28,231 nucleotides of DNA, taken from positions 1 through 28,231 of the forward strand of contig NW_021827536.1 of the NCBI RefSeq assembly GCF_006345805.1, written 5' to 3'. The notes beneath the pieces were generated by a model. The model was not told the DNA's origin, did no database searches, and worked only from the letters and a program-made list of their open reading frames with translations. A program made the translations under genes and the position numbers. This stretch comes from Octopus sinensis. Taxonomy: Eukaryota. Positions within the stretch are counted from its first letter, which is position 1, and each line of letters opens with the position of its first letter. Shown in pieces: positions 2,498-28,231 of this stretch.

Positions 2498-4487
2498 ATG
2501 TCCCTCGTAATCGATCTACGAAACAGTAAATACAACTAATTAACCCCAGAAATAATGGAGGAAATGATTGACCCTCATCGCTACCAACAATCCATCCTCA
2601 TCCTCGACGAAAGGACCAAACGAATAATGTCCTGCTGCATAAAACTCCACGAATTAGCCGACAGAGGAATATGCAGTAACCCCACCAACTCATCCCCAGG
2701 CGTCGAACGTCTGGAGGCAAGGAGACAACCCCTCTCCATTAACGCCATCTACTTCATATCCCCCACCCAAGAGGTACCCCACCTCCTAACCCCAGTCCTT
2801 CGCCTACCTCATCGACGACTTTGACTCCAAGCCTGCCTACTCCTCAGCCTCCGTCTTCTCTCCCGGGGTCATCGGTGATGACGTCATCGCCACTGTGGGG
2901 CAAAATGACGTGAGGAAGTACCTCAAAAGGATGACTGAGTTGGATGTGGATTTTGTCCCTTTCTCTGCCAATGTGGCACTTTTGGACACTCCCAAGTCCT
3001 TCCAGGCGTGTTTTGGTGTCCCTCATACTATTTTCCCGCCACAATTGTTGTCGAATGTGGAGTCATTGGTGTCCTTCTGTGCCTTCCTGAGAGAAGAGCC
3101 GAACATTGCCTATTACAAGTGAGACCCCTCTATAACCAGGCCGGGCACATGTACCTACAAATTTGCCACGCTGTTGAAGGAGAGACTCGCCTCTCTCGCC
3201 AATTTGGAGGCTCAGAACAAAAACGTGGCTATTTTGGGACATTTTTAGGAGTTTGTGTCACAAAAGTCGCTCATTTTGGTGGTCGACCGCAGCATGGATG
3301 TGATAACCCCCATCATCCACTCCCTCAGACTCGAATCACTCGCTTATGACATATTGCCAATGGAGGGAAATATTTACACGTTTTTTTCCCGCCATTTTAT
3401 ATTAGGCCGTCGGGAAGTGAGAAAAAAGACGCGGGAGTGGTCCTCGACGACTTTCACCAGTTTTGGGCGAAGTACCGCCACCTTCACATCGCGGAGGCCA
3501 CCCGGTTTGTGGGTCAGTCTAATTGGGAGGGAAATATCCGCGGCCATGAAGAGTCTGACCAAGGAGGTCTCCGCGGACACAAAAACGGTGACGGCCTTCG
3601 CGGACAAAGTCAAACAAATGCCCTTCTACCGTCGACAACTGTCCCAGCTGAGTGTCCTCCTCAAAATCGCGGAGGAGTGTGTGGGGTACTGCCAAGGGGG
3701 TGGTCAGGCGGCGTGTGTGGTCGAACAGGAGTTGGTGAGTGGGGTGGATAAGAACGGAGACACAATCCGTGACTTTATGGTGACCATCCTTCCCATCATC
3801 TGTGACAAAAAAGTGTCCGTCGCCGCAAAACTCCGCGTTTTTTTTCTTTATGTCATTCAGAAAAAAGGTTCCTGTCATTTTTGGAGTGTAGGGATATCTC
3901 GGTCGAATGTGGACAGGATATTGGGCCATGCAACAATTCCGTCCTCTGATCTTGTGGCGGTGGAGAATCTGCAGAAACTTGGCGTGAGGATATTCGACGA
4001 TGACGTCATTGATTACGTAATAATATATAGGGAGGGGGGATGGTGGAGCATTACTATCGGAAGTGTCATGTGGATGTAAACCAGGAGGAGGTGTTGGTGG
4101 GTACTCGTTGGAAGCCTTCTTTGGTTAATTTGGTGAAGGTAGAGAAGTGAGTGAGTCATTTGAAGGAGACATTGTCTGGTAAGCTCAATAAGAATATGTT
4201 TTCGTTGTTGGAGGGGGGAGTGCCCACTCTGAACACCAGCAAAGTAGTGAGGTGGGTTGATTGGGGTGATTGGTAGTGCGAGGTATGGGGCGTGGGCGTC
4301 GAAGGATCCTCGTCGGGGGGAGACGAAGGCTTATTTGATTGTCTACATGATTGGAGGGATCACCCCCAGTGAGATCGCGGCCGTGAATGACCTCAATGAG
4401 GAATTGAGTGCGACCTGTCGGATTGTCCTTGTGTCTGATTTTATATCTACCTGGCCTGTATTTCTGGATAATTTACGGTCGCTTTAA
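2498..4487 (+). CDS. STXBP1: Sec1/Munc18 (SM) family syntaxin-binding protein, Munc18/ROP-like; 12 exons
   Basis: Removing 11 GT-AG introns (24,24,22,21,24,26,25,24,26,27,25 nt; e.g. 2526-2549, 3380-3405, 3505-3529, 4139-4165) gives one open frame: MSLVIDLRNKIMEEMID...RIMSCCIKLHEL...AIYFISPT...LVVDRSMDVITPIIHSL...KYRHLHIAEATREIS...TRWKP...SARYGAW...LIVYMIGGITPSE...LRSL*. These motifs parallel Munc18 (MLSSCCK, DRGFD, LRHKHIAE, SRWTP, SARYGHW, FILGG). Paralogue assignment is uncertain. Confidence 0.93.
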
Positions 4488-9977: not shown

Positions 9978-11120
9978 ATGATTTTGAAAACTCTTCATTT
10001 TGCAGACGATCAATTATTCTCTTATTCCAAATCAGGAACACATAAAATTGTTATATGTCCTTTTGAACATGAAAGGATTCAATCTATTCTTTGTGATGAA
10101 CATAATGAAGGACATCCTGGGTTCAATAAAATGTGTTATCTAATTTCTCAAAAATATATTGGAATTAAACAATGTATAATTCGTGATTTTGTATCAAAAT
10201 GCATACCGTGCCAATCATTTAACTCTTTAAGTACTTGTGAAAATATCAGAATGATTTCTGTGGAAAAAAAATACGAAAGATTTATCGCCGACTGTATAGA
10301 TCTAAGGCGGTATTCTGCAAATAATGACAATTTTAAATGGATACTTACTGTCATCGATGCATACACAAAGTTTGCATGGTCATTCGCGTTAGAGAATAAA
10401 ACATCACAAAGCATCTATAATGCAATTGAGAGTTTATTCCAGACTGTCGGTCCTCCAATTTATTTTCATTCGGACAATGGAAAGGAATTCCGCAACAAAG
10501 AAGTTTCAAAACTTTTTGATGATTGGAAAATAACTCCGATATATGGAAGACCAAGGCACCCACAATCTCAAGGACAAATAGAAAGATATAACCAAACTCT
10601 CAAACGTTGGTTGGGGAAGACTTTGTTCGCAACAGAATCTATAAGGTGGAGAGAAATTCTACAGAAGGTGGTGTATAAATACAACATAACTTGTCATCGC
10701 GCAACTGGAAAGTCACCATTTTGGTTAGTCTCTTTTTATTTACCCAGTCTATTTTACGGAATAACGGGTTTTAATATTTTGCCATGTGGAGGCGCAGAAG
10801 AAGAGATTAACTCAGAATCGGAAGAAACGGAATTATCCTTAGAAGTAAAAACTCATAATGAAAAGTATAAAAGAAAAGTTACAGAAGACGCAAATAAAAA
10901 TTTTCGAAAAAAAGATATCACAATTGGAGATAATGTTACAATTAAAATTGATTTCGATAAAAATATAAAAACAAGAAAATATCCACTCACTAGTTTTTTT
11001 AGCAAGGAACAATTTCTAGTAGTGGAAGAAGTTTCTCTGCATTCCGTTCTCGTTGAGAATTGCACATCTGGTGAAAGGAAGACAATTCCAAAGTCAATGA
11101 TTAAAAAAATTAACTTTTAA
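9978..11120 (+). mobile_element. Stand-alone Gypsy-like DD35E integrase/transposase (Ginger2/TDD, KRBA2/SCAND3-like) with one 24-nt intron (10724-10747)
   Basis: HHCC finger (EHNEGH...CIPC), IADCID, HSDNGKEF, and GRPRHPQSQGQIERYNQ with 35 residues between D and E. No RT or RNase H upstream. Splicing gives TGKSPFCLFYG. Confidence 0.85.
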
Positions 11121-11419
11121 AAAATTACATTTTCATTTTATATTCAATCAATTTGTAATGTTTCTTTAAAAATTGTTTCATAATATAAGTGAACTTTTGC
11201 TTTGTTTTATTCGACATAGGAGACGTTGCTTCTATACTGGAAGAAGATCATCTCGTCTAAACCCTTTTCGTCACATAAATAAGGACCGGAAGAGTTTGCA
11301 CAGAATCATATGTAGCGGTTGAATACAGACTCTGTTGAAAACTGAATTTATATTATACGAGACTGTTTGGGACAATGTTTGTAAATTTTATTATCTATTT
11401 TTATGTTTAGTTTCGGTTT

Positions 11420-11525
11420 TCGATTTAGCTCTCGAAAATCCTTCGAAGTGAACTCATTCCTCTCAACACATCGTATTGACATTGCACTGTTCCAAGAGAC
11501 GAGGCTCTCTCCATGTAAACCATAA
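11420..11525 (+). mobile_element. Short N-terminal LINE AP-endonuclease fragment
   Basis: KSFEVNSFLSTHRIDIALFQETRL matches the K..E+..FL....IDI..LQET.L motif. Confidence 0.65.
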
Positions 11526-11602
11526 CTAATTAACAATCGAAGCTATTTCTTTGTGAATTCGTGGTTAATGAAGATACATTACGTAATTCATTTAATTTTT
11601 AG

Positions 11603-11817
11603 AAGAGTCGATAGTGGAAATAGACAAGTGCAAATTTTTTCACAGAAAGTACCATCATTGGCGACCAGGCCATTGGGTATTGGGTGGAATAGACAGGGAA
11701 ACTAGAAAGTACTTTTTTGAAGAAGTTGCAGGTTCTTTTTCCATTTATCCTTTAGACAGGGCAGCGGAAACACTCAATGAAGTTATCGTTCGACGCGTAC
11801 TTCCCAAAAACTCGTAA
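11603..11817 (+). mobile_element. Merlin (IS1595/ISXO2-like) transposase fragment with a 24-nt intron (11732-11755)
   Basis: IVEIDKCKFFHRKYHH...WVLGGIDRETRKYFFEEVA|DRAAETLNEVI...VLP matches Merlin VEIDESKF..RKY.RG...WV.GG+ER.....F...V.DR.A.TL...I...+LPG. Confidence 0.85.
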
Positions 11818-11819
11818 AA

Positions 11820-12180
11820 AGGCAATTACTAAAATTGGAGATTACCGCACTTCTTTGCGGTGAAAGGAATCTATGGCCTTCAGTTTAGTATCCGAGCTCC
11901 CACATGTCAAAGAATTATAAAGTAGACAAGTTCACAAAGGCGTTGTGGAGCCTTGATCTGAGTTGGCAATTTACAGGCCGGGCTTGGAGCCAAGTTTGCA
12001 TATTCTGCTATCTTCGAGTAGAGCCCCATGTTTCTTGACATTCCTCAAAGTTTCAACAAGTCATGTTCGTTTGTTTTATCTCAGTGAATTCAATTTTGGA
12101 AGTGTTGTACGCTCAATTCTTTCTCGATCAGGTCGGCTTCCCGTCCATGAAGCTTTCAGACCGAATTCTTTTTTTCATTA
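11820..12180 (-). mobile_element. RTE-like LINE post-RT fragment
   Basis: Contains LLYNSLT...LKAIDSFHRK, matching LLY..ETW...LD.FHR+.LR. The segment 12107-12156 is homologous (inverted) to 18878-18928. Confidence 0.55.
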
Positions 12181-12789
12181 AATGATTAGGCGTTGTTAAC
12201 ATACATAAAGAATTAATGAAGAAATAATAAATTGACTGCGTGAAAAATACAAAACAATATCTCTTTGAGGAAACCTCCTTATTCTCTTTGATTGAGTCAT
12301 CTCAGGACAACCAGGACCACGAATACAAATAAAACGACCGAAAACACACCTTCTGGTCAAAAACTTTAAAATGGGAAAGAGTATATAGAATTTTAAAAAA
12401 CAGATTAGAAACAGATTAGAGGAATAAAATCGGAAAATATCACAAAAATGACGAAATTTCAGATAATTAAATCACTAAAAGAAATTTCATCACAAAATAT
12501 TCCTTCTGAATCCAATTTAATACAAAAAAATAAAACTAAACTAAATAACAAGAACACCACAACAAACTAATTCAGCGGCATCTATGCATGTGCCATAATT
12601 TATTAGGTTTGCCATCAAAAATTAAGATAATTAAACAATAATTAATGAAAAATAGTTTATAATTATTATTGAAATAATTATCTGTATCTTTTATTTAGGT
12701 TTTTCTAATCGGTCCATAAAAAGTACATCTAATTAAATTTTGTAAATTTCTAGGTTCATTTTTTACTAAGGATAAGTAAAATCATCTCT

Positions 12790-13350
12790 GAAATATATTT
12801 GATCAAAAATACTTCTTATTTAAGACGCCATGTCAAAAGTGCTTTCCATTATCAATGTCTATGCTCCTCACAGTGATATTCTCCGTCGTCAATTCGATAA
12901 GGTTGCTTTATCTGAATCTTGATCATACGGAGGGTCTGGGGTCGGAGTGATCATAAAATGATTGTTGGACGTTAAAGAGACGCTATACGTTTCTTGAATC
13001 GGTGAAATTCCTACCTGGAACTACTTTTCCTCCGTGGCGACTAGGCTCTCATGGAACTTTTTCCTGAAAGAAATCCATATAGCGGCTGGCAAACACATCA
13101 GAAAGCAGACAAATAAACCCAGTCTGGAAAGGTATGCCATCCAGATGTGTATTCACATACCGTTAAGCAAAAAGATCGTAAACTCAAAATTAAAAATAAA
13201 TATGACTGTAACAACAAATATGTATTGAAGAATGAACGTGCAAGAATACAAAGACGATTCAAGAAATTGAATTGTCAGCACGGAACTGAAGTCTTTTTTA
13301 GGAGAAATCGAAGAACTCGAGGGCGAGGCACACATGTTTCATGCAACTAC
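12790..13350 (+). mobile_element. Deleted LINE AP-endonuclease and linker fragment
   Basis: IINVYAP, then SDHKMI, then WNFFLKEIHIAAGKHI, all in the expected order. Confidence 0.55.
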
Positions 13351-14035
13351 TTAAAATAAGAAAATACAGAAAACTCAAAATCATCAACGACATTTGAAAA
13401 ATTATTCAACCCCTGACATGAACATTGAAGTTAAACTTATTAATTCAGTGATTGACAATGCCTTTTAATTGGAACATTCCTATTCGACGATGTTTCAGAA
13501 CCAACGATGGAAAAATTGTCGTTAAATTTTACGTTGAAAAGGAATTTATGGAGTCCTTTATCCACACTAAGACGCATCAAAAAGACTATTATGTATTTTA
13601 AGAAAACAGATGTGCTAACCTTAGTGCTATAAAAACTAAACCGAAATTATTTTGGATATCTCAGATTTTTCTTGAAATAATTTTTGTGGGAATTAAGTTA
13701 GATTTGATCGACGTATCAATTTAACTATTTATGTTCATTTAATTTCGCTTTATTGATGGCGAAGTATAAATTTGCAACGGCTCAAATAATAGATTCGAAA
13801 TATTTGTTTTCTTGATTTTATTTGTTCGTAAAATATGCTTTATAAACACGTTCAATCCTTCAGTCCATCCTCTAGAATAATATTTATGTAAAAATTGTCT
13901 CTAAAAACTACATCAGGCGTCGCAGAGATCTAACCCTTGGCTAATCAAAAAAATTGCCAAAACAGGAGGGTAATTCCTACAACACAATAAAAATCAGCAA
14001 ACTCGCATTTACAGGGAAAATAAGTAAATATAAAA

Positions 14036-15847
14036 TCACACTTTATCCAAATGTGCATAGACTACACGCAATTTACGACGCGGATTCCTCGACCGATTCT
14101 TCCACGGTTTGCCACACTCGTCGGAATATACCCGAGGAGGGTCACGTTGCATTGGATTGTGAGACATGTACCCATATCCAACCGACCCTTCATTCCTCCG
14201 AAAGAACACCTCGTCCAACTTATCCAACAACACGTCCTTCGTCACAGACTCCACACATTTGACGACATCCCGCACCTTCATCCCCTTCACCCTCTCCACC
14301 AGTCCAGAAATAGGCTGATACTCATCCACCGACACTCCAGGCGGGGGGTGGCAGTAAACCAGACATCCCTGAGATGATTGACCAAGCATACAGCCGAGTA
14401 GTCCTTGATCAGTCTGTGGGCAGCCTTCGCGTAGTTTGGCCGTCCTTTGCTCATCCAATTCCTCGCCTCTGCGGATTACTGCCAGTCCCCACCTGCCAGA
14501 GTCCCCAAAAAATCTTCCGTGAGTTTATACTGTGATGGTGGAGGACTATTCTCAGTGAATGTCACATTATAGAACTGCTTGAGCACGCAAATGGGAATTC
14601 GTTGGACAATCTGAATGATACATTCAAAATGTACCAGAATGGCAGGAGACATGTAATCTATCATTGAGAGGGGGCAGTATTGAGGATAGGACTAGTTCAG
14701 ACTGGTCAATCACAAAATTAGGCATGACAAGTCCTGGACAGTCACACAACATCAATTTGTTATCCTCGTGAGTTATTAAATGAGTCTGCAAGTGCTTTGT
14801 CCGGCCTGGGGTGGCTGAGACTGCTGTCTTCTGTTGTTCAGAAGAGCATTGATGGTCGAACTCTTTCCAACATTGGGATACCCAATCATCCCCACAGAAC
14901 ATGTCTCCTCACTCGACATTCCTCTCAACTTTCTTAGCAACTCATCCCGATTTAGAATTGGCCACTCCTCCCTCCTCAGCCAGCCCCCACAAGAGCAGAC
15001 CAAAAGAACACATTCACCCGATCGAGTCAAAATATTTGTTCCAGAACATTCTAGAACATTCCAGAATATTCTACCTCTGGTTGGCAGGCATGAGAAGGTC
15101 AGATTTATTCATAAGGAGAAGTACCTGCTTCCTACCATCAACTTCCTTAACATATTTCTCCAAGTCCTCACAACGAAAGAGGAGAGGATTTCGGGCATCC
15201 ACCAACTGAACCACCACGTGACTGTCCAAATAAATGAATGACGTCACCATTTCTCCACAACCCGCCACAATTGTCTCCATAAATCGATATTTCGTTCATA
15301 AGGAGTGACTCGTAGTTGGTGGGAGGATTGGATTCTACAGTCAGCAGACAGTCTACAGAGAGAGGTTGCGTCTCCAGTCGAGGAAGTAGTCCTTTTCTAT
15401 TCGGTCAAGCACCTGCTTAGTCCAATCCTTGCTCCACGGAGGTCTCCAATACTGAGGACACACAACCTTCGAGGGATTCGAAGATATTCCTTCAAATTCT
15501 CGTGATTTTCACACATTTCCTGTCGCTGGGCATCACTCAGTCCATTTTCGGTGGGGACCACAATTTTATACTCAGGACGGTCTAGAACATTCTGAGTGAG
15601 GAAACTTGCTGTGAAATCCCTGTCGGCCATTTGTGCGAGGGAAATGAACTCTTCGAGGGTACTTTGATGTGTGACTGAGATCAAAGGCGGCCGTTCTTTG
15701 ATGTGTGGGGCTGCATTTTCGTTTAGTGCCACCTGGAAGTAAATATTGAGGAAGTACAAAGTTGTTAGTGTTGTGTCTTCGCTTATTTTCTGCTCGTTTA
15801 TTACCGATTAGACTCTCTCCTAGGTTGGCTGTTCGGGGTCTTGGCAT
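14036..15847 (-). CDS. LSG1: LSG1 large-subunit GTPase (60S export factor), copy 1; frameshifted in this sequence
   Basis: At least 9 introns of 22-26 nt. Spliced motifs: LRIPRRPPW, WRRNL...TPYERNIDLWRQLWRVVE, VQLVDARNPLLFRCEDL, NKSDLL, GYPNVGKSSTINAL, VSATPGRTKH, DCPGLV, KDY..G.LVYCHPPPG, GKPWK...YAHLD. Small indels at about 14665, 14833, 14975-14995 and 15018 relative to copy 2 break the frame. Confidence 0.93.
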
Positions 15848-17400: not shown

Positions 17401-17868
17401 AGAAGGCTTTTTTATTCAGTTTTGTTTTTTTGTATTTTTCAGATTCTGGTTTCGGCGTATTTTATGGATCAGAGACCAAATGGATGAAAAATGGTTGATG
17501 GGAGTGCTTGGAGTTGCTTCTATCAGTCAATTCGATCCCAACACTTTTCAAAAAGTGTGTTATGTGTTACTCTTCAAAAAGTGTGTCTTCATAAGCTTTG
17601 TGACTGGTTGTCCATAGTTCGTTCCAAACAGCCTAATATTTGCCATTTTTAGTTTTTGTTGGCATACGGTAACGCTAATGAACAGATTCAGACGGCAAGC
17701 GTCCGAAACTTTTTGGTGGAAAGTCCTGGTTTGGTGGTGGGAAAGTTATATCAACAGTTTTTGATTGATAATATTCATATTACTATTTCCGATAGTTGAT
17801 ATTTATTCTTTTTTAATCTATACCTTTCCAAGTTCAAAGTGGGATTTTCCAAATTCAATATGGGATTT

Positions 17869-18783
17869 TTTTTTTTATTAATGCAAATTTAATACAGTCA
17901 AATTAATTAATAGAGAATTAATGTCGTGAACTTGAGGGTTAGTCCGACGACGAAGCACTGCGGATAGAGAGGCAGTTCCCGCGAAGAATTGCACCGAGAT
18001 GCGCTGGAAAAGCCAGCTCGTCTCCCTCCGGTCATTTGTATTCTGTGAGATTCTTCCTCTCACAACCCGTAACAGATTTCTACCTTCTTTCCACCACCCC
18101 GGAGGTCTCAAAGGCTAGGGGGACAACTCAACGACGTTCGGAAGCACAGCGTACTTCGTCAACTTCCTTTCTTCTGCCAGCGCACATGCGTAGCCGGTGT
18201 ACTGGCTGTTCCTGTGAGCACAGTATCTGAAAAGGAGTCGACGCAAGTTACATCCCAAACAAGAGACCTTCCTCCTCTAAAGGGGAATATAGTCACCCGT
18301 CAGGACGCTTTCCGTCACTGCGGCAGAGCCCAATAGGTCAAGGTCGATGGGAATCCCGCAGAATCCAAGCCCTTTTCACCACTTCATTGAGGAGGACGTG
18401 GCGGGGAAATCGGCCAGCACTCCTCTACAGGACAATGCGTGTAAACCGTTCGAAGGAATCAAAAAACCACAGCGACAACGTGAGGTTGGCAGTTTCAAGT
18501 CCAAGTCGAAGACACACTCCGATACGTATAGTTTCGTCTTCCATAAGCAGACCATTGGACGCCAACGGAAGTGCGTTAGCCAGTCTCCTGAGTGAGGCGA
18601 CAGGCACAGTTCAAAAAGCCAGTTCCAACTGTCGACTCGCGTGCGAAGACTCTCCAACAGGTGTGTGCACCAGATGACATCCCAACTCTTCTGTATTGAA
18701 GGAATCTCCGGAAGGCCAAGTCCGAGCGATCTCCAGGCGAGAACAGCAACAGGGTATTCCGTAAGCTCATCAAGTTCGAGTGC
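17869..18783 (-). mobile_element. 5'-truncated CRE-like non-LTR retrotransposon with poly(A) and a 10-bp TSD
   Basis: Across frameshifts: PHSGDW.NALPLASNGLLMEDETIRIGVCLRLG, CRCG...GLHALSC, GLCRSDGKRPDG, SLVWDVTCVD, AEERKLTKY, D.RETSWLFQRISV. Poly(T) on + at 17866-17876. TATGGGATTT at both 17859-17868 and 18784-18793. Confidence 0.9.
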
Positions 18784-19289
18784 TATGGGATTTCCAAGTT
18801 AATTTTAAAATATTGAAAAAAAATCATGACTCATTTGTGTTTTTACTATTTGATAATAACTACAAGTTAATTAATTAAAAGCTTCATGGGCGGGAAGCCG
18901 ACGCGATCGAGAAAGAATTAGAGCGTACTATCGCAAGGATATCCGCTCGAAAAACCATCTCGATTTGCCGGCGTAAACGAAAAAATTAAAATGTTACGTC
19001 CTTGTAATTTAATAAAGAAGGCAATAGTCCTTGGATTATGGCTATTCAAGAGTCCTTGGAACCACCTCTTAAATCATCCTTAAAGCCTTCTTTTATCCAC
19101 CTGTATGCAGTTGTTCTTTCTATTCCGAGAGAAAATGCAACTTGATTCCAATCCCCATCATTTTCGTAAACGGTCAACAAATTTTTTCTTTTTTCAGCTA
19201 ATTCTTTCTTTTTATTACGTACATTTTGTAATGTAAGGCGATTTTAAATTAATAAATGAATTAATAATAATAATTCAATAACCGACTTG

Positions 19290-19390
19290 AAAATCCTTGA
19301 ACTAGAAAATCCCATATTGAATTTGAAAATCCCACCTTGAACTTGGAAATCCCATATTGAATTTGGAAATTCCCATATTGAACTTGGAAA
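19290..19390 (-). repeat. 20-21-bp tandem repeat (TTCCAAGTTCAATATGGGA-type), about 5 units; inverted copy at 17826-17868 plus 18794-18800
   Basis: On +: GAAAATCCCATATTGAATTT, GAAAATCCCACCTTGAACTT, GGAAATCCCATATTGAATTT, and further units. Confidence 0.85.
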
Positions 19391-19573: not shown

Positions 19574-20610
19574 TTAATCAGTTGTTTCATTGACTTTTCT
19601 GTCATTATACTGTTTATATAATGCACAAATAATGTCTCCCGCAACATGATCATTGACATTGTGGGAGACCATTATCAGAGCTAAAACTCCATCAGACTGC
19701 AAGTATTCGTCAACAAAACGCAAAAAGTATCATCCGGGTCACTTCTCAGTTGAACTGGATGGATGAGCAGTCTCCCCCATTCAAATATGCTCCAAATGTT
19801 AAGACAGATCACACCTCCCAGCCAAAACCAATAAAAAATGAACATCCCCTCCAATATCCGTTCATGGAAAAAACACACTGAACTGTGTATTTTTTCCCGG
19901 CAATCTCTTCTCCCAACTCACGGATATAAAACTCACAGAGGGACTCTCGAGGGAATGCCGGAGACCATCTGCGGATTCCCGAATATAATTCTGGGCGAAT
20001 TGCCAACCATAAAACCCAAAAGTGCCACCAGAGAGGAGAATATCAGTCAACACAAACTGGAGTAGACATTGAGTAAATACAGTATTTTGCAAGTAATGTA
20101 CGTCAAAGTGAGACAATTAGTACACCACTTTTTGTATGCTCTGTACTTGAAATGCAGATTAAAATGCATAAGTGATAGTTCGACAAGTTCCTCTCTGTTT
20201 TGTGTGTCGTATTTGGAAAATAGTTCTATTAGAGATGACAAATCGAGTCCGAAGTGTCCACAGTTGAGTCTCCAGAACAGTCTGGGAAGTTGACAGAGGA
20301 ATGCAAATGTGAGGAATATAAACTGTGTCCACTGATAATACCGAGGGTGGTGTGTCCCGGATGTGTTGACAGAGTGGATGTCCACAACCCAGCAGACTGA
20401 CTGAGTATATAACACATAGTCCACTGCAATAAAGCACATTATTACCATCATCTGACAAACACATAATTGGATTGAACAAACACTGAAAAACAGTCGCAAT
20501 GACAGTAAACACAACTAACAGCAAACACGTATAAAAGTGAGTGACACGGTCATGAAATGGTCGTCTCTCTGTGGCTCAAACACACTCTTTACTACTTCCC
20601 AGAGGTCCAT
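19574..20610 (-). CDS. Innexin (invertebrate gap-junction channel), about 340 aa, one 22-nt intron, five apparent 1-nt frameshifts
   Basis: MDLWEVV...DDHF.DRVTHFYT...NPIMC...SVCWV...RYYQWTQF...LPRLFWR...KILYLLN...FPRESLCEFYIRELG...YTVQCVF...MFIFYWFW...FVDEYLQSDGVLAL. All four extracellular Cys and the YYQW signature are present. Confidence 0.9.
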
Positions 20611-20732: not shown

Positions 20733-23700
20733 TTATTCGACATCCTCAACTTGAGCACTGCCAGTCCCCTCAACCACTCCACGAATATCATTCAGCTGAC
20801 CCTCACTACCCACATTAGACAAAACACACCTTAGTCGAGTGAATCGAATTCCCAACAGAAAATTAAAATGTTCAACCACAGCCGCCGCTGCGATGGACGA
20901 AATTTGGCTCGATTGCTCACAATTTCAGACGCGTCGGGTTTTCTGTCAGAATTGAGCATTCTCTGCAATTCCACTGCATGGTTGGTGTAGTCCCTCAGTC
21001 GTTCACACACAGCCCTCGTCATCACGTGGTGTCCCCCAACTTGCATGACCAACCCATTCTAACCTCCTTCGAGTATATCCCACGGGCTCTTTGCTCACAG
21101 TTGATTGCCTCACGGAATCTATACACACCAGCATGGGCCTGAGCTTGCAGGACAAATCCGAATGCCAGTTTAATCCTATCAGCAGGCGAGGAGGCACCCT
21201 CCACCAGGTCCACCGCACGACTGATGTAGTCCATCCCCACATCTGTGTCGTCCATGTGGAGCATAAGCATGCCGATGGTCATCTACCAATGACGAGTCAA
21301 TATCACATTGATTCTGTAAAACTGAGGGTTGTTCTCTCCCTCCGTACAGGAGAGTGAGATAACGTACTCGCCACATAGCGTTAACAGCCAAATCGACCTT
21401 CCCCACTGTGAAGGCGTTAGTGCGAGGGATGTCTGAGTGTTGGAGAGGGAGGACTACCAAGGAGGAGATTGCATCGGGGGAATCCACTCCGGCCAGTCTC
21501 TCACACATTATCACTGCCTGTCTCTGCATTTCAAAGGCATTCACGAATTCTCCGAGAATGTAGTTCACTCGACCCAGCAAGGTCACAGCAGACACCACCA
21601 TCATGTGTAGGGGACCATAAATATGAGTCAATATCCCCAATGTCTCCGTGATCAGTTCATATCCCGCCTTCAAATGTCCTGCGGTAATCAAGTACTTGGC
21701 CTGTGCGAGACACTGCATACAGTCCACAGACTACAATACACGCCACACTACTCACTTGAGGACTCACACACTTCACACGCGGATATACCCCCACAATGTC
21801 GTCCTCGGTGAAGACGGGGTCACCGGGGGTCCCCACTTGCTCGAACACCCTCGGGTAGTCCCTGAGTGCTATCCTCACTCCCAGGACAGTGCAGAACTGC
21901 CTCAACAACACAACTCGATTGACGTGTAGTTGGTCAGTCACAACGTCGACTGAATAGCCATAGTAAGTGGCCATCTCCTCTCTCACCAGTCCCCACAGAC
22001 CATTGTAGTCCATGCTGGCCATAGTCGAGCATATTCGGGACTTGCCTTTCTTCCCCATCCTTGCAGTCCCTGGGAAAAGCAAACAGTTCATAAAATGTGA
22101 AATCGACTGGGCATTCACAGTACCAATGACACGACGGAATACATGTTTAATAGAACGTCCCACCAACTCCAACACAGCCACGTCCTACAAGGTTATCACC
22201 CAAGCACAGACTGCTAGGAATGAGTCCTTCCCCGCCAAGGCCACCTCCCCCAAATAGCGGACGTTGATTCCCCTAAAATAGACCGAGTGAGGGCAACATG
22301 GCGTGCATATTCTTGACCAATTCACTCCCACAGAACTCATAACTCAGCTCACACTCATTCACTAATAACTCCACCTTCGAATGACACACCACTCATACCA
22401 TGCTCGGGATTTGAATCAGCACTATGAACTCACACAATTCTTTGTTCAGTCTTTTTTCCTTCTTCAATGCCTCGCTCTGAGAATTCACCCAACAATCAAC
22501 CTCCACACAACACACCGATGGCTGGTAAAGGTCCGGATTAAACCCAATCTTCATCTCCGTCTCTGAAAGGGACCCCACTTCTTCCAACGCCTCTTTCCAA
22601 CAATCGGCATCAACCATATTACACAACAACCAACCATCCTCCTCAACCACTCCTTTCGATTTCTTCCGTCTGAGATATGCCTCATTCAGTTCCTTATTCT
22701 TTAATCGGGAAAAGTAATCGAGCAATTCAGGACGGACTGCGCATAATTTGTGTTCGTGTCTTCGCGGGTAATCTTTGGCTCGCATTCTTTCATCAAATTC
22801 GCCCACATCCATTCCATCCAAATAATTAATATCTGGGGGGAATGCGGTGGCCAAATCAAGAAGGTAACTTCTTCCATCACGTCCCACAATTCCCTTCGAT
22901 TCGGCCGCAGACGCCAGTTCCACCTGTTCAGTTCCATCAGAAATATGCACACTGTGGCGAACCAACATGAACTCACGCGAAAATATATCCAACTGCAAAT
23001 TTTCCGGCCAATACTACTTTGGCCATGAACTCGTCATTGGTCAGAATTGTTTTGGTGGTCAAAGTCTCCTTAGTTCCGTAAATGACCATTTCCTCCATTT
23101 TGTCCATAATGCCTGGGAGTAAGGGGGAGGGGAGACCGGCGATGAGGGACTGAGCACACACCCGTCTCCCGCAGTAGTCCACCACAACAGTCCCCAGAAA
23201 ATGGACATCCTTCTGCTCAACAGAAGAGAAAGCAGCAATTCCCTGAATATCCAAACTCTGGGCAGAATGGGCGGCCGAATCACCCCCCACCTGAGTATAC
23301 GACTGAGCCACATCACACGCATTCGAAAAAAACATGTTGTTCCAAATATACACGTTGTTTCTACGGAATGAAGGGAATCGACGACCTCTCATTCTCACTG
23401 GGGTTGGCTGCCATGATGCACCCATCAGTCACACTACAACAACCCAGCACGGCTGTCCCCAACATATCACAGTGGACCTTCCAATTAATAAACATGGAAA
23501 ACTCTAAAAATATTTCTATCGCGGAAAATCCTCTCCCAGGGAGTATTAGTGGGCAGGTCTCGGGCAGATTGTAATTCCTCATTCCAATCACGGATATTGC
23601 AGGGGAGGTTGTCCTCAATCCCCAGTCGATTGGAAAACGCGTCCTCTGCTCTCAAATAGTCGGGGCAGTGAGCAATTGGAGGACTAAACCACGTGTAGTA

Positions 23701-23853
23701 CTGATGAGGAGTTGGGAGTCGTTCAAGGGAGTCCCTCGACCTCCTCCTCTCTACCAACCCCCCATAAACACGTTTAAAGTGGTGGGATATCTAAATAGTT
23801 CAAAACTAATCAACATTTTGGAGAAGATCGACAAGTGAGTGGTGGACTGTCGA
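20733..23853 (-). CDS. CLUH: Clustered mitochondria protein (CLU1/clueless/TIF31); lacks its N-terminal part at the duplication junction; about 15 micro-introns
   Basis: HSLVDLL, ERLPTP, RAEDAFSNRLG, RDWNEELQSARDLP, IWNNMFFS, VVDYCGRRVCAQS, GIVGRDGRSYLLDL, GINVRYLG, ELVGRSIKHVFR and the C-terminal TPR region all match the CLU family. Frameshifts at about 21418, 21338 and 21035. The exact stop codon depends on two inferred 3' introns. Confidence 0.9.
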
Positions 23854-24256
23854 ATTTTGGTTAGTCCCTTTTTATTTACCCAGTCTATTTTACGGAATAA
23901 CGGGTTTTAATATTTTGCCATGTGGAGGCGCAGAAGAAGAGATTAACTCAGAATCGGAAGAAACGAAATTATCCTTAGAAGTAAAAACTCATAATGAAAA
24001 GTATAAAAGAAAAGTTACAGAAGACGCAAATAAAAATTTTCGAAAAAAAGATATCACAATTGGAGATAATGTTACAATTAAAATTGATTTCGATAAAAAT
24101 ATAAAAACAAGAAAATATCCACTCACTAGTTTTTTTAGCAAGGAACAATTTCTAGTAGTGAAAGAAGTTTCTCTGCATTCCGTTCTCGTTGAGAATTGCA
24201 CATCTGGTGAAAGGAAGACAATTCCAAAGTCAATGATCAAAAAAATTAACTTTTAA
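23854..24256 (+). mobile_element. 5'-truncated duplicate of the integrase (intron plus last exon only)
   Basis: Matches 10718-11120 with a few substitutions. Confidence 0.9.
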
Positions 24257-24738
24257 AAAATTACATTTTCATTTTATATTCAATCAATTTGTAATGTTTC
24301 TTTAAAAATTGTTTCATAATATAAGTGAACTTTTGCTTTGTTTTATTCGACATAGGAGACGTTGCTTCTATACTGGAAGAAGATCATCTCGTCTAAACCC
24401 TTTTCGTCACATAAATAAGGACCGGAAGAGTTTGCACAGAATCATATGTAGCGGTTGAATACAGACTCTGTTGAAAACTGAATTTATATTATACGAGACT
24501 GTTTGGGACAATGTTTGTAAATTTTATTATCTATTTTTATGTTTAGTTTCGGTTTTCGATTTAGCTCTCGAAAATCCTTCGAAGTGAACTCATTCCTCTC
24601 AACACATCGTATTGACATTGCACTGTTCCAAGAGACGAGGCTCTCTCCATGTAAACCATAACTAATTAACAATCGAAGCTATTTCTTTGTGAATTCGTGG
24701 TTAATGAAGATACATTACGTAATTCATTTAATTTTTAG

Positions 24739-24956
24739 AAGAGTCGATAGTGGAAATAGACAAGTGCAAATTTTTTCACAGAAAGTACCATCATTGGCGA
24801 CCAGGCCATTGGGTATTGGGTGGAATAGACAGGGAAACTAGAAAGTACTTTTTTGAAAAAGTTGCAGGTTCTTTTTCCCATTTATCCTTTAGATAGGACA
24901 GCGGAGAAACACTCAATGAAGTTATCGTTCGACGCGTACTTCCCAAAAACTCGTAA
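24739..24956 (+). mobile_element. Duplicate Merlin fragment (intron 25 nt here, frameshift after it)
   Basis: Matches 11603-11817, with one extra C in the intron and 2 extra nt in the following exon. Confidence 0.85.
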
Positions 24957-27175
24957 AAAGGCAATTACTAAAATTGGAGATTACCGCACTTCTTTGCGGT
25001 GAAAGGAATCTATTGCCTTCAGTTTAGTATCCGAGCTCCCACATGTCAAAGAATTATAAAGTAGACAAGTTCACAAAGGCGTTGTGGAGCCTTGATATGA
25101 GTTGGCAATTTACAGGCCGGGCTTGGACCCAAGCTTTGCATATTCTGCTATCTTCGAGTAGAGCCCCAAGTTTCTTGACATTCCTCAAAGTTTCAACAAC
25201 TCATGTTCGTTTGTTTTATCTCAGTGAATTCAATTTTGGAAGTGTTGTACGCTCAATTCTTTCTCGATCAGGTCGGCTTCCCGTCCATGAAGCTTTCAGA
25301 CCGAATTCTTTTTTTCATTAAATGATTAGGCGTTGTTAACATACATAAAGAATTAATGAAGAAATAATAAATTGACTGCGTGAAAAATACAAAACAATAT
25401 CTCTTTGAGGAAACCTCCTTATTCTCTTTGATTGAGTCATCTCAGGACAACCAGGACCACGAATACAAATAAAACGACCGAAAACACACCTTCTGGTCAA
25501 AAACTTTAAAATGGGAAAGAGTATATAGAATTTTAAAAAACAGATTAGAAACAGATTAGAGGAATAAAATCGGAAAATATCACAAAAATGACGAAATTTC
25601 AGATAATTAAATCACTAAAAGAAATTTCATCACAAAATATTCCTTCTGAATCCAATTTAATACAAAAAAATAAAACTAAACTAAATAACAAGAACACCAC
25701 AACAAACTAATTCAGCGGCATCTATGCATGTGCCATAATTTATTAGGTTTGCCATCAAAAATTAAGATAATTAAACAATAATTAATGAAAAATAGTTTAT
25801 AATTATTATTGAAATAATTATCTGTATCTTTTATTTAGGTTTTTCTAATCGGTCCATAAAAAGTACATCTAATTAAATTTTGTAAATTTCTAGGTTCATT
25901 TTTTACTAAGGATAAGTAAAATCATCTCTGAAATATATTTGATCAAAAATACTTCTTATTTAAGACGCCATGTCAAAAGTGCTTTCCATTATCAATGTCT
26001 ATGCTCCTCACAGTGATATTCTCCGTCGTCAATTCGATAAGGTTGCTTTATCTGAATCTTGATCATACGGAGGGTCTGGGGTCGGAGTGATCATAAAATG
26101 ATTGTTGGACGTTAAAGAGACGCTATACGTTTCTTGAATCGGTGAAATTCCTACCTGGAACTACTTTTCCTCCGTGGCGACTAGGCTCTCATGGAACTTT
26201 TTCCTGAAAGAAATCCATATAGCGGCTGGCAAACACATCAGAAAGCAGACAAATAAACCCAGTCTGGAAAGGTATGCCATCCAGATGTGTATTCACATAC
26301 CGTTAAGCAAAAAGATCGTAAACTCAAAATTAAAAATAAATATGACTGTAACAACAAATATGTATTGAAGAATGAACGTGCAAGAATACAAAGACGATTC
26401 AAGAAATTGAATTGTCAGCACGGAACTGAAGTCTTTTTTAGGAGAAATCGAAGAACTCGAGGGCGAGGCACACATGTTTCATGCAACTACTTAAAATAAG
26501 AAAATACAGAAAACTCAAAATCATCAACGACATTTGAAAAATTATTCAACCCCTGACATGAACATTGAAGTTAAACTTATTAATTCAGTGATTGACAATG
26601 CCTTTTAATTGGAACATTCCTATTCGACGATGTTTCAGAACCAACGATGGAAAAATTGTCGTTAAATTTTACGTTGAAAAGGAATTTATGGAGTCCTTTA
26701 TCCACACTAAGACGCATCAAAAAGACTATTATGTATTTTAAGAAAACAGATGTGCTAACCTTAGTGCTATAAAAACTAAACCGAAATTATTTTGGATATC
26801 TCAGATTTTTCTTGAAATAATTTTTGTGGGAATTAAGTTAGATTTGATCGACGTATCAATTTAACTATTTATGTTCATTTAATTTCGCTTTATTGATGGC
26901 GAAGTATAAATTTGCAACGGCTCAAATAATAGATTCGAAATATTTGTTTTCTTGATTTTATTTGTTCGTAAAATATGCTTTATAAACACGTTCAATCCTT
27001 CAGTCCATCCTCTAGAATAATATTTATGTAAAAATTGTCTCTAAAAACTACATCAGGCGTCGCAGAGATCTAACCCTTGGCTAATCAAAAAAATTGCCAA
27101 AACAGGAGGGTAATTCCTACAACACAATAAAAATCAGCAAACTCGCATTTACAGGGAAAATAAGTAAATATAAAA

Positions 27176-28231
27176 TCACACTTTATCCAAATGTGCATAG
27201 ACTACACGCAATTTACGACGCGGATTCCTCGACCGATTCTTCCACGGTTTGCCACACTCGTCGGAATATACCCGAGGAGGGACACGTTGCATTGGATTGT
27301 GAGACATGTACCCATATCCAACCGACCCTTCATTCCTCCGAAAGAACACCTCGTCCAACTTATCCAACAACACGTCCTTCGTCACAGACTCCACACATTT
27401 GACGACATCCCGCACCTTCATCCCCTTCACCCTCTCCACCAGTCCAGAAATAGGCTGATACTCATCCACCGACACTCCAGGCGGGGGGTGGCAGTAAACC
27501 AGACATCCCTGAGATGATTGACCAAGCATACAGCCGAGTAGTCCTTGATCAGTCTGTGGGCAGCCTTCGCGTAGTTTGGCCGTCCTTTGCTCATCCAATT
27601 CCTCGCCTCTGCGGATTACTGCCAGTCCCCACCTGCCAGAGTCCCCAAAAAATCTTCCGTGAGTTTATACTGTGATGGTGGAGGACTATTCTCAGTGAAT
27701 GTCACATTATAGAACTGCTTGAGCACGCAAATGGGAATTCGTTGGACAATCTGAATGATACATTCAAAATGTACCAGAATGGCAGGAGACATGTAATCTA
27801 TCATTTGAGAGAGGGGCAGTATTGAGGATAGGACTAGTTCAGACTGGTCAATCACAAAATTAGGCATGACAAGTCCTGGACAGTCACACAACATCAATTT
27901 GTTATCCTCGTGAGTTATTAAATGAGTCTGCAAGTGCTTTGTCCGGCCTGGGGTGGCTGAGACTGCTGTCTTCTTGTTGTTCAGAAGAGCATTGATGGTC
28001 GAACTCTTTCCAACATTGGGATACCCAATCATCCCCACAGAACATGTCTCCTCACTCGACATTCCTCTCAACTTTCTTAGCAACTCATCCCGATTTAGAA
28101 TTGGCCACTCCTCCACTTCCTCAGCCCCACAAAGAGCAGACCAAAAGAACACATTCACCCCGATCGAGTCAAAATATTTGTTCCAGAACATTCTAGAACA
28201 TTCCAGAATATTCTACCTCTGGTTGGCAGTG
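27176..28231 (-). CDS. LSG1: LSG1 copy 2, 3' part, in frame; 5' end lies outside the window
   Basis: Continuous ORF 27616-28191 carrying GYPNVGKSS, SATPGRTKH and DCPGLV with no frameshifts. Same introns as copy 1. Confidence 0.92.

Follow-up and report, generated by a model that had tools for sequence, protein, structure and literature searches.

Ultra-short introns with reduced splice signals and some purine-AG acceptors in a 28-kb contig of the Octopus sinensis assembly

The window analysed here is the whole 28,231-nucleotide (nt) stretch of contig NW_021827536.1 from the Octopus sinensis assembly GCF_006345805.1, read on the forward strand from position 1. It is eukaryotic DNA in which exons of ~50% GC, cut by introns of ~24 nt, are set in AT-rich, repeat-rich sequence. 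Three genes supply the introns studied: a Sec1/Munc18 (syntaxin-binding protein) gene on the + strand (2498..4487); LSG1 (large-subunit GTPase 1) on the - strand, present as copy 1 (14036..15847) and as the 3' part of a copy 2 that is cut by the window end (27182..28231); and CLU (clustered mitochondria homologue, CLU/CLUH) on the - strand (20733..23853), recognized by its homology to CLU references. Sec1 is an intact open reading frame (ORF) with 11 introns and a single terminal stop after splicing, and its conceptual protein can be aligned over the full length with squid s-Sec1 (the best match, E = 5.6e-81) and with rat Munc18-1. The LSG1 protein has thousands of orthologue matches (best E = 4.6e-96). 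An earlier note on this DNA had pointed to introns that end in GAG or AAG and lack a polypyrimidine tract. We conclude that these are in all probability ultra-short GT-AG spliceosomal introns with extremely reduced signals, defined by geometry rather than by motifs.

Anatomy of the introns

Introns were mapped with our own protein-to-genome spliced aligner, which applies no splice-site weight matrix and treats every GT..AG of 15-120 nt as a possible intron, whatever its phase. The references were 22 diverse LSG1 orthologues, 22 full-length CLU homologues and three Sec1 proteins (squid Sec1, rat Munc18 and one Sec1-like). This aligner replaced an ab initio codon-usage Viterbi gene model, which missed in-frame introns and excised conserved segments. 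The resulting set holds 32 introns (Sec1 11, LSG1 9, CLU 12), namely those recovered with most references and a few fixed by frame or alignment. Placed in this way by homology and reading frame, the same introns were recovered across references, and the spliced models have no internal stops. The three 3' introns of LSG1 were read from copy 2, because copy 1, unlike copy 2, is frameshifted there; in sequence these introns do not differ between the copies. We found no further multi-exon gene in the window with which to enlarge the set.

All 32 introns begin with GT and end with AG, as the aligner requires, and 30 of them are 21-27 nt long, with a mode of 24. Information is concentrated at the two termini (~1.9 bits each at GT and AG) and does not exceed 0.5 bit at any other position; it is at most 0.1 bit at +3..+10 and 0.22 bit at -3. 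No pyrimidine tract precedes the acceptor, as the earlier note had said: the pyrimidine (Y) fraction is 0.56 at -12..-4 (range 0.33-0.78) against 0.58 at +3..+11, and the median longest Y run is 4 nt. We considered U12-type introns and rejected them, since no intron carries a /RTATCCTT donor or a TCCTTAAC branch site and there is no donor consensus beyond GT.

A further positional feature is an A at a rather constant distance from the donor. Among the 30 short introns, A is found 9, 12, 14 and 10 times at nt 15, 16, 17 and 18, against 3-8 times (typically 5-6) elsewhere, and G is almost absent at nt 16. Every short intron has an A within nt 14-19, for which the expectation per intron is 0.775. 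The peak at nt 16-17 from the donor corresponds to -10 to -7 from the acceptor. The earlier note had seen a CTAAY/TGAY-like motif a few nt upstream of the AG, and an element that is TRAY-like or rich in A is indeed there, with ACTAAT, CCTAAC, TCTAAT, CTGAC and TTAAT as examples; a YTRAY match in the 3' half is found in only seven of the 30.

The acceptor follows a simple positional rule. In all 30 short introns it is the first AG that ends at least 20 nt from the donor. Internal AGs occur at 19 of 480 positions ending at or before nt 19 and at none of 100 from nt 20 to the acceptor, where 3.96 were expected (P = 0.018). The suggestion that the AG is chosen by position is borne out in this sense: Sec1 3505-3529, LSG1 15466-15444 and LSG1 27632-27609 each skip a CAG that ends at nt 13-15, and GAGs ending at nt 23-25 are used. 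Seven acceptors have further AGs 2-6 nt downstream, which are unused or form in-frame NAGNAG ambiguities.

Acceptors with a purine at -3

The base at -3 is T in 15 introns, C in 10, A in four and G in three. Purine-AG acceptors thus make up seven of the 32 (22%, exact 95% confidence interval 9-40%; G 9%, A 12.5%), and 78% are YAG. In typical animals ~5-6% of acceptors have a purine at -3 and at most 1% have G. Measured against these general-knowledge frequencies, the excess gives P(>=7 purines | 6%) = 0.0025 and P(>=3 G | 1%) = 0.004, and the near-universal YAG of canonical metazoan introns is not found in this set. For comparison, acceptor efficiency in human falls in the order CAG > UAG > AAG > GAG (PMC11802449).

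The four flagged introns with such acceptors exist where the earlier note had placed them, with GT donors and the acceptors it named, as judged by spliced alignment and frame. All four are required for the frame and for invariant motifs, and for the purine-AG introns we enumerated every frame-compatible GT/GC..AG alternative. In Sec1, intron 3505-3529 (GTTTGTGGGTCAGTCTAATTGGGAG, +, 25 nt) ends in GGGAG and leaves an ungapped HIAEATR|EIS alignment. It skips an internal CAG at nt 11-13 and has TCTAAT 7 nt from its 3' end; its sole YAG alternative, an intron of 13 nt, would add four residues to the protein. The second flagged Sec1 intron (4139-4165, 27 nt) ends in TGAAG and contains an in-frame TGA; it offers no YAG option, all frame-compatible alternatives ending in purine-AG. 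Intron 15466-15444 of LSG1 (-, 23 nt), placed by 22 of 22 references, ends in TTGGAG, and its splicing rebuilds LRIPRR|PPW, identical in beetle and octopus LSG1 (coral has LRIPRRPEW). It does skip an out-of-frame CAG (nt 13-15), as had been noticed, use of which would give a 15-nt out-of-frame intron. In CLU, intron 23502-23478 (-, 25 nt) ends in GGAAG, again with 22 of 22 references and an ungapped NIFR|VHCD. For both the LSG1 and the CLU intron, YAG alternatives arise only by deleting conserved residues. As no plausible YAG alternative is left for any of the four, the original observation was correct. Its further remark that other CLU introns end in this way also agrees with our mapping: 22398-22375 ends in AAG, 20930-20908 in GAG, and the acceptor at 21040 is AAG or GAG whatever donor is taken.

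The description of these acceptors as relaxed holds for the direction of the change, with 22% purine, and fails for its degree, as 78% are still YAG, purines are rarer than a neutral base would make them, and one GAG is bypassed in Sec1 3868-3891. From intron-interior composition 42% purine would be expected at -3 (P = 0.013 for the 22% observed), which argues that the acceptor is weakened, not free. Exonic NAG triplets, moreover, are distributed quite differently (GAG 45%, AAG 27%, CAG 22%, TAG 6%; chi-square p = 8.5e-14). Local composition may also bear on -3. The GC skew of introns tracks that of their flanking exons (rho = 0.48, p = 0.006), and introns with a purine at -3 are G-rich, with a mean GC skew of 0.47 vs -0.07 for the others (p = 0.019). 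These correlations suggest a -3 base that drifts, for the most part, with the composition around it.

Two further observations concern the same triplets. In the 5.6 kb of spliced coding sequence of Sec1, LSG1 and CLU, TAG is strongly depleted (20 of 338 NAG triplets), even in the two non-stop frames, and only two of 115 exonic decoys of the form 'GT..first AG at 21-27 nt' end in TAG; TpA depletion or avoidance of cryptic acceptors are possible causes. At -4, G is the commonest base (14 of 30 short introns, in GTAG and GRAG endings), which is not a feature of canonical animal acceptors and may be compositional.

Remaining introns, direct repeat and neighbouring features

The other Sec1 introns (all +) begin with intron 1 (2526..2549, 24 nt, CAG), which has moderate support, joins MSLVIDLRN-K-IMEEMI and contains ACTAAT. 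Three more CAG introns follow, at 2676..2699 (24 nt, C-rich, 3/3 references), 2774..2795 (22 nt) and 3119..3139 (21 nt, the shortest in the set). The remainder end in TAG: 3225..3248 (24 nt), 3380..3405 (26 nt, T-rich), 3868..3891 (24 nt, with the bypassed internal GAG ending at nt 19), 4005..4030 (26 nt) and 4252..4276 (25 nt, G-rich, GTGGGTTGATTGGGGTGATTGGTAG). Two acceptors lie in NAGNAG tandems, TAGGAG at 3246-3251 (3251 being an in-frame alternative acceptor) and AAGGAG at 4163-4168 in the flagged intron 4139..4165; in each the choices are one codon apart and homology cannot separate them. Along the gene the four CAG, C-rich introns lie 5', and the G-rich introns with GAG, AAG or TAG lie 3'. 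Within this single gene the GC skew of the coding strand passes from -0.18 (2-3 kb) to +0.25 (4-5 kb), and the introns follow.

In LSG1 (all -), the first intron (15733..15757, 25 nt, CAG; 10/22 references) has moderate support and links the ATG frame to the next exon, and a candidate in-frame intron (15582..15605, 24 nt, TAG; 12/22) is the weakest of the set. After the flagged intron (15444..15466) come 15335..15356 (22 nt, TAG; 22/22), with CTGAC 6 nt from its end, 15222..15247 (26 nt, CAG; 22/22), and 15051..15074 (24 nt, TAG), whose sequence recurs in copy 2 at 28193-28216. The three introns read from copy 2 all end in CAG: 27751..27774 (24 nt, 21/22; copy 1, 14611-14634), 27609..27632 (24 nt, 20/22, with an internal CAG at nt 12-14 skipped; copy 1, 14469-14492) and 27509..27531 (23 nt, 22/22; copy 1, 14369-14391).

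Among the CLU introns (all -), those ending in TAG are 23791..23814 (24 nt, 20/22 references), 23361..23385 (25 nt, 20/22), 22273..22297 (25 nt, 18/22), 22185..22211 (27 nt, 17/22), 21731..21755 (25 nt, 16/22) and 20806..20829 (24 nt, with GTCTAAT 9 nt from its end); intron 22993..23017 (25 nt, 16/22) ends in CAG. Besides the flagged intron (23478..23502), which has TTATTAAT 7 nt from its end, purine-AG is found at 22375..22398 (24 nt, AAG; 11 + 5 references; the alternative at 22369 is GAG) and 20908..20930 (23 nt, GAG; moderate support from three references reaching the C-terminus). A probable in-frame intron (22477..22500, 24 nt, CAG; 5+3 references), whose removal gives an ungapped PSVCCVE|SEALKKEKR, stands outside the 32. 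Two introns are ambiguous. One (21283..21322, TAG, 17/22) has an uncertain donor and is either 40 nt long, or 24 nt (21283-21306) with a 1-nt frameshift. The other (21040..21083, purine-AG) has uncertain boundaries and reads as 44 nt with AAG, as 24 nt with AAG (21040-21063) and a frameshift, or as 26 nt with GAG (21015-21040). We rejected the 40-nt and 44-nt forms as typical introns: each alignment to orthologues is free of gaps once a 24-nt intron and a 1-nt frameshift are assumed. In both cases a 24-nt intron beside a 1-nt indel is probable, and more indels are likely in this segment.

LSG1 and CLU lie in a repeated part of the window. A direct repeat of 4.4 kb joins 10718-15087 and 23854-28229 at 99.4% identity (14 substitutions, 12 indels; offset ~13.14 kb), its indels being concentrated at 14664-15017 in copy 1 (27804-28158 in copy 2). 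The left edge (10718) falls inside a retroelement integrase ORF (pol fragment, 9978-11117, +, 380 aa, with integrase zinc-binding and rve core domains), for which an exact-protein look-up found no record; LSG1 copy 1, CLU and an innexin gene lie in or adjoin the repeat. As the second copy extends to the end of the window, a ~13.1-kb unit seems to have been duplicated in tandem, unless the repeat is an artefact of assembly. Compared with copy 2, the 3' half of LSG1 copy 1 is frameshifted by several indels. One of them, a 1-nt deletion at ~14832, falls inside the G1-proximal STINALLNNKK, which copy 2 has in frame. Either copy 1 became a pseudogene very recently or its sequence is poorly polished. 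Homology to CLU starts exactly at the repeat junction (23853), at reference residues ~210-400, next to a duplicated 3' fragment of the integrase ORF (23854-24256). This CLU copy is therefore 5'-truncated and is short of its N-terminal third, some 200-400 residues.

The innexin (~19700-20514, -) is recognized by Pfam PF00876 (E = 5.6e-12) and by INX-6 (E = 5.6e-11). Its coding sequence is interrupted by an in-frame TGA at 20049-20047, for whose removal no AG lies close enough, and by two apparent 1-nt frameshifts near 19955 and 19860, which indicates a pseudogene or assembly indels. We left it out of the intron statistics because of the in-frame stop and the frameshifts. Short dispersed repeats include a 20/40-nt tandem repeat, TTGAACTTGGAAAATCCCATA (19295-19390; 17819-17869), with inverted copies ~1.5 kb away, and a 51-nt element in inverted orientation at three sites (12107-12156 / 25247-25296 against 18878-18928). 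Rfam, tRNA and Pfam scans of the other ORFs in the window gave nothing relevant.

Proposed definition of the splice sites and probable source animal

The reading that we favour is that of introns measured out from their 5' end. The GT donor would come first. An A ~15-18 nt downstream (mostly 16-17), often in a loose YTRAY-like element, would serve as the presumed branch point, and the acceptor would be the first AG that ends 20-27 nt downstream of the donor and 5-10 nt beyond this A. The gap would be too short for a U2AF65-type pyrimidine tract. The -3 base would keep a weak preference for a pyrimidine, mainly T, and would otherwise drift with local strand composition, which would yield AAG and GAG acceptors in G-rich stretches that have no competing YAG nearby. 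The branch-point role of the A, and a choice of the 3' site by scanning from it in the 5'-to-3' direction, are our inference; the pattern matches the published scanning model of 3' site choice (PMC12707134).

Several points weigh against this reading. Every junction was placed by homology to proteins and by frame, the 32 introns, from three genes, are a small sample, and the 20-nt threshold was picked after inspection of the data. A near-identical direct repeat with indels and frameshifts contains two of these genes, and the boundaries of two CLU introns are ambiguous. At -3 the base is not neutral but retains a Y bias, and intron 3868-3891 of Sec1 is a counter-example to pure distance, as its acceptor is a TAG that ends at nt 24 and not the GAG that ends at nt 19; together, the bias and the skipped GAG indicate that sequence still matters. 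No near-identical database sequence was found, word-indexed protein searches giving one weak match for Sec1 and none for the innexin, and the spliced/unspliced junction pattern had no match among metagenome contigs. Sec1, however, lies outside the repeat, is intact and has both a GAG and an AAG acceptor, so that the phenomenon does not depend on the doubtful copies.

An extreme reading, which we regard as unlikely, is that in this animal lineage the acceptor is set purely by a donor/branch ruler, with the U2AF heterodimer (or its surfaces that read -3 and the tract) and/or the Prp8/Prp22 check of -3 dispensable and a near-neutral -3 base tracking strand bias. The related proposal of the earlier note was that the U2AF1/U2AF2 heterodimer has been lost or altered in its RNA-binding residues, so that tract and -3 pyrimidine go unread and the AG is picked purely by distance. 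The missing tract, the mere 0.22 bit at -3 and the first-AG rule in 30 of 30 short introns fit this proposal. The RRM1-2 region of U2AF65 binds ~9 nt, and the branch-to-AG gap of 5-10 nt is shorter than this footprint. Yet U2AF1 and U2AF2 are conserved in all myxozoans examined, including species with ultra-short introns (PMC13644364), which means that such introns do not need the loss of U2AF. The residual 78% Y at -3, so different from exonic NAG (p = 8.5e-14), likewise implies that something still reads this position, and we hold loss or change of U2AF to be unlikely. As -3G is also discriminated at exon ligation, that step is an equally plausible place for the relaxation. A changed residue in the Prp8 alpha-finger (the equivalent of yeast Q1594) or weaker proofreading by Prp22 could make a purine tolerable there: in yeast, Prp8 Q1594A specifically rescues GAG acceptors and shifts a GAGUAG tandem to the proximal GAG, and Prp22 mutants also permit gAG (PMC12707134). 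The use of GAG in our introns when it is the first suitable AG matches the Q1594A phenotype. No splicing-factor gene, Prp8 and Prp22 included, lies in the window. In Sec1 3868-3891, however, the proximal GAG is bypassed for a TAG 5 nt downstream, as in wild-type yeast, although this GAG may be too close to the branch point, and we give the exon-ligation explanation the same low credence.

Least probable is that the purine-AG acceptors are artefacts, that is, misplaced boundaries, assembly errors or decaying pseudogene acceptors, with functional introns using YAG. Such a view would draw on the 99.4% repeat with 12 indels, which includes or adjoins LSG1 copy 1, CLU and the innexin, and on the frameshifts or in-frame stop of these genes. 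It is opposed by Sec1, which has a clean ORF outside the repeat and still one GAG and one AAG acceptor, and by the failure of any YAG alternative to keep both the frame and the conserved motifs. The two copies differ by only 14 substitutions in 4.4 kb, which makes a recent change at a given -3 base unlikely. Published genome-wide logos of D. japonicum, too, have no -3 signal (PMC13644364).

The favoured reading, introns of fixed geometry, has close parallels in the dicyemids, for which we compared Dicyema acuticephalum, D. japonicum and Dicyema sp. (further sources: Lu 2019, PMC6736024; Zverkov 2019, PMC6543705). Their introns were reported as very short and uniform in 2007 (26.2 +/- 1.9 nt; Aruga 2007, PMC2222250), and then as having a mean of 24.9 nt, a 5' boundary weaker than any other known and no branch-point signature, with ctaatt as the most frequent branch-like hexamer (Irimia & Roy 2008, PMC2483917). 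Across the D. japonicum genome, GTa is what remains of the 5' site and AG of the 3' site, the pyrimidine tract is missing or minimal, and weak A residues lie at a distance from the AG that grows with intron length (Hadjez, September 2026, PMC13644364). GC makes up 36.7% of this genome and repeats 49%, and its introns average 38 bp; in Dicyema sp. the median intron length is 27 bp, and there are 21 innexins. The window shares with the dicyemids the narrow lengths of 24-27 nt, the GT(a)/AG sites, the lack of a pyrimidine tract, the weak A upstream of the AG, the repeat-rich genome of ~37-39% GC and the innexins; we see no essential difference, for a window whose dicyemid origin is itself our deduction. 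Ultra-short introns, a Sec1 closest to the cephalopod protein, an innexin, and ~39% GC with many repeats make a dicyemid the most likely source animal.

Other systems resemble the window in part. The myxobolid myxozoans (Henneguya salminicola, Thelohanellus kitauei, Myxobolus spp.; PMC13644364) are also parasitic animals with introns of median 22-27 nt, reduced splice motifs and A residues as putative branch point, and our introns have the features of this dicyemid/myxobolid class, that is, narrow lengths under 30 nt, GT(a)/AG sites and a weak A positioned from the 5' end. Myxobolids, however, are cnidarians, and the best Sec1 match of the window is to squid s-Sec1. Ciliates (Paramecium ~25 nt, Stentor 15-16 nt) and the nucleomorph of Bigelowiella natans (18-21 nt) likewise have narrow lengths near the physical minimum, only GT(A) at the 5' site and no branch-point signature (PMC2483917), but these hosts are not animals. 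Saccharomyces cerevisiae, which has no U2AF35 and proofreads YAG by Prp8/Prp22, also takes the first suitable AG past the branch point with no required pyrimidine tract, and there GAG is the least favoured acceptor, yet usable (PMC12707134). It differs in that its branch site is a rigid UACUAAC, its donor a strong GUAUGU and its introns much longer; the window has no donor or branch consensus and a whole intron of ~24 nt. With the canonical metazoan site (branch point, polypyrimidine tract and YAG, read by SF1-U2AF65-U2AF35) our introns share the GT-AG termini and the residual pyrimidine preference of 78% at -3. They depart from it in the lack of a tract, the branch-to-AG gap of 5-10 nt, and the 9% G and 12.5% A at -3.

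As minimal splice signals in dicyemids were published in 2008 and genome-wide in 2026, our finding was already known, and is a correct rediscovery. What it adds is small and comes from a small sample: explicit counts at -3, the first-AG rule, and the link between -3 and GC skew. How the spliceosome recognizes signal-poor introns of ~24 nt is called open by the 2026 paper itself (PMC13644364), and the window offers concrete test cases for this question, with GAG acceptors used while an upstream CAG is ignored and one GAG skipped for a nearby TAG. If the acceptor were set purely by a ruler, this would be the first metazoan with a yeast-like or simpler acceptor definition. Three measurable rules emerge: the branch A would lie ~16-17 nt from the donor, the acceptor would be the first AG to end 20 nt or more from the donor, and the -3 base would follow local composition. 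From the window, ~20% purine at -3 would be expected genome-wide, and more in G-rich contexts.

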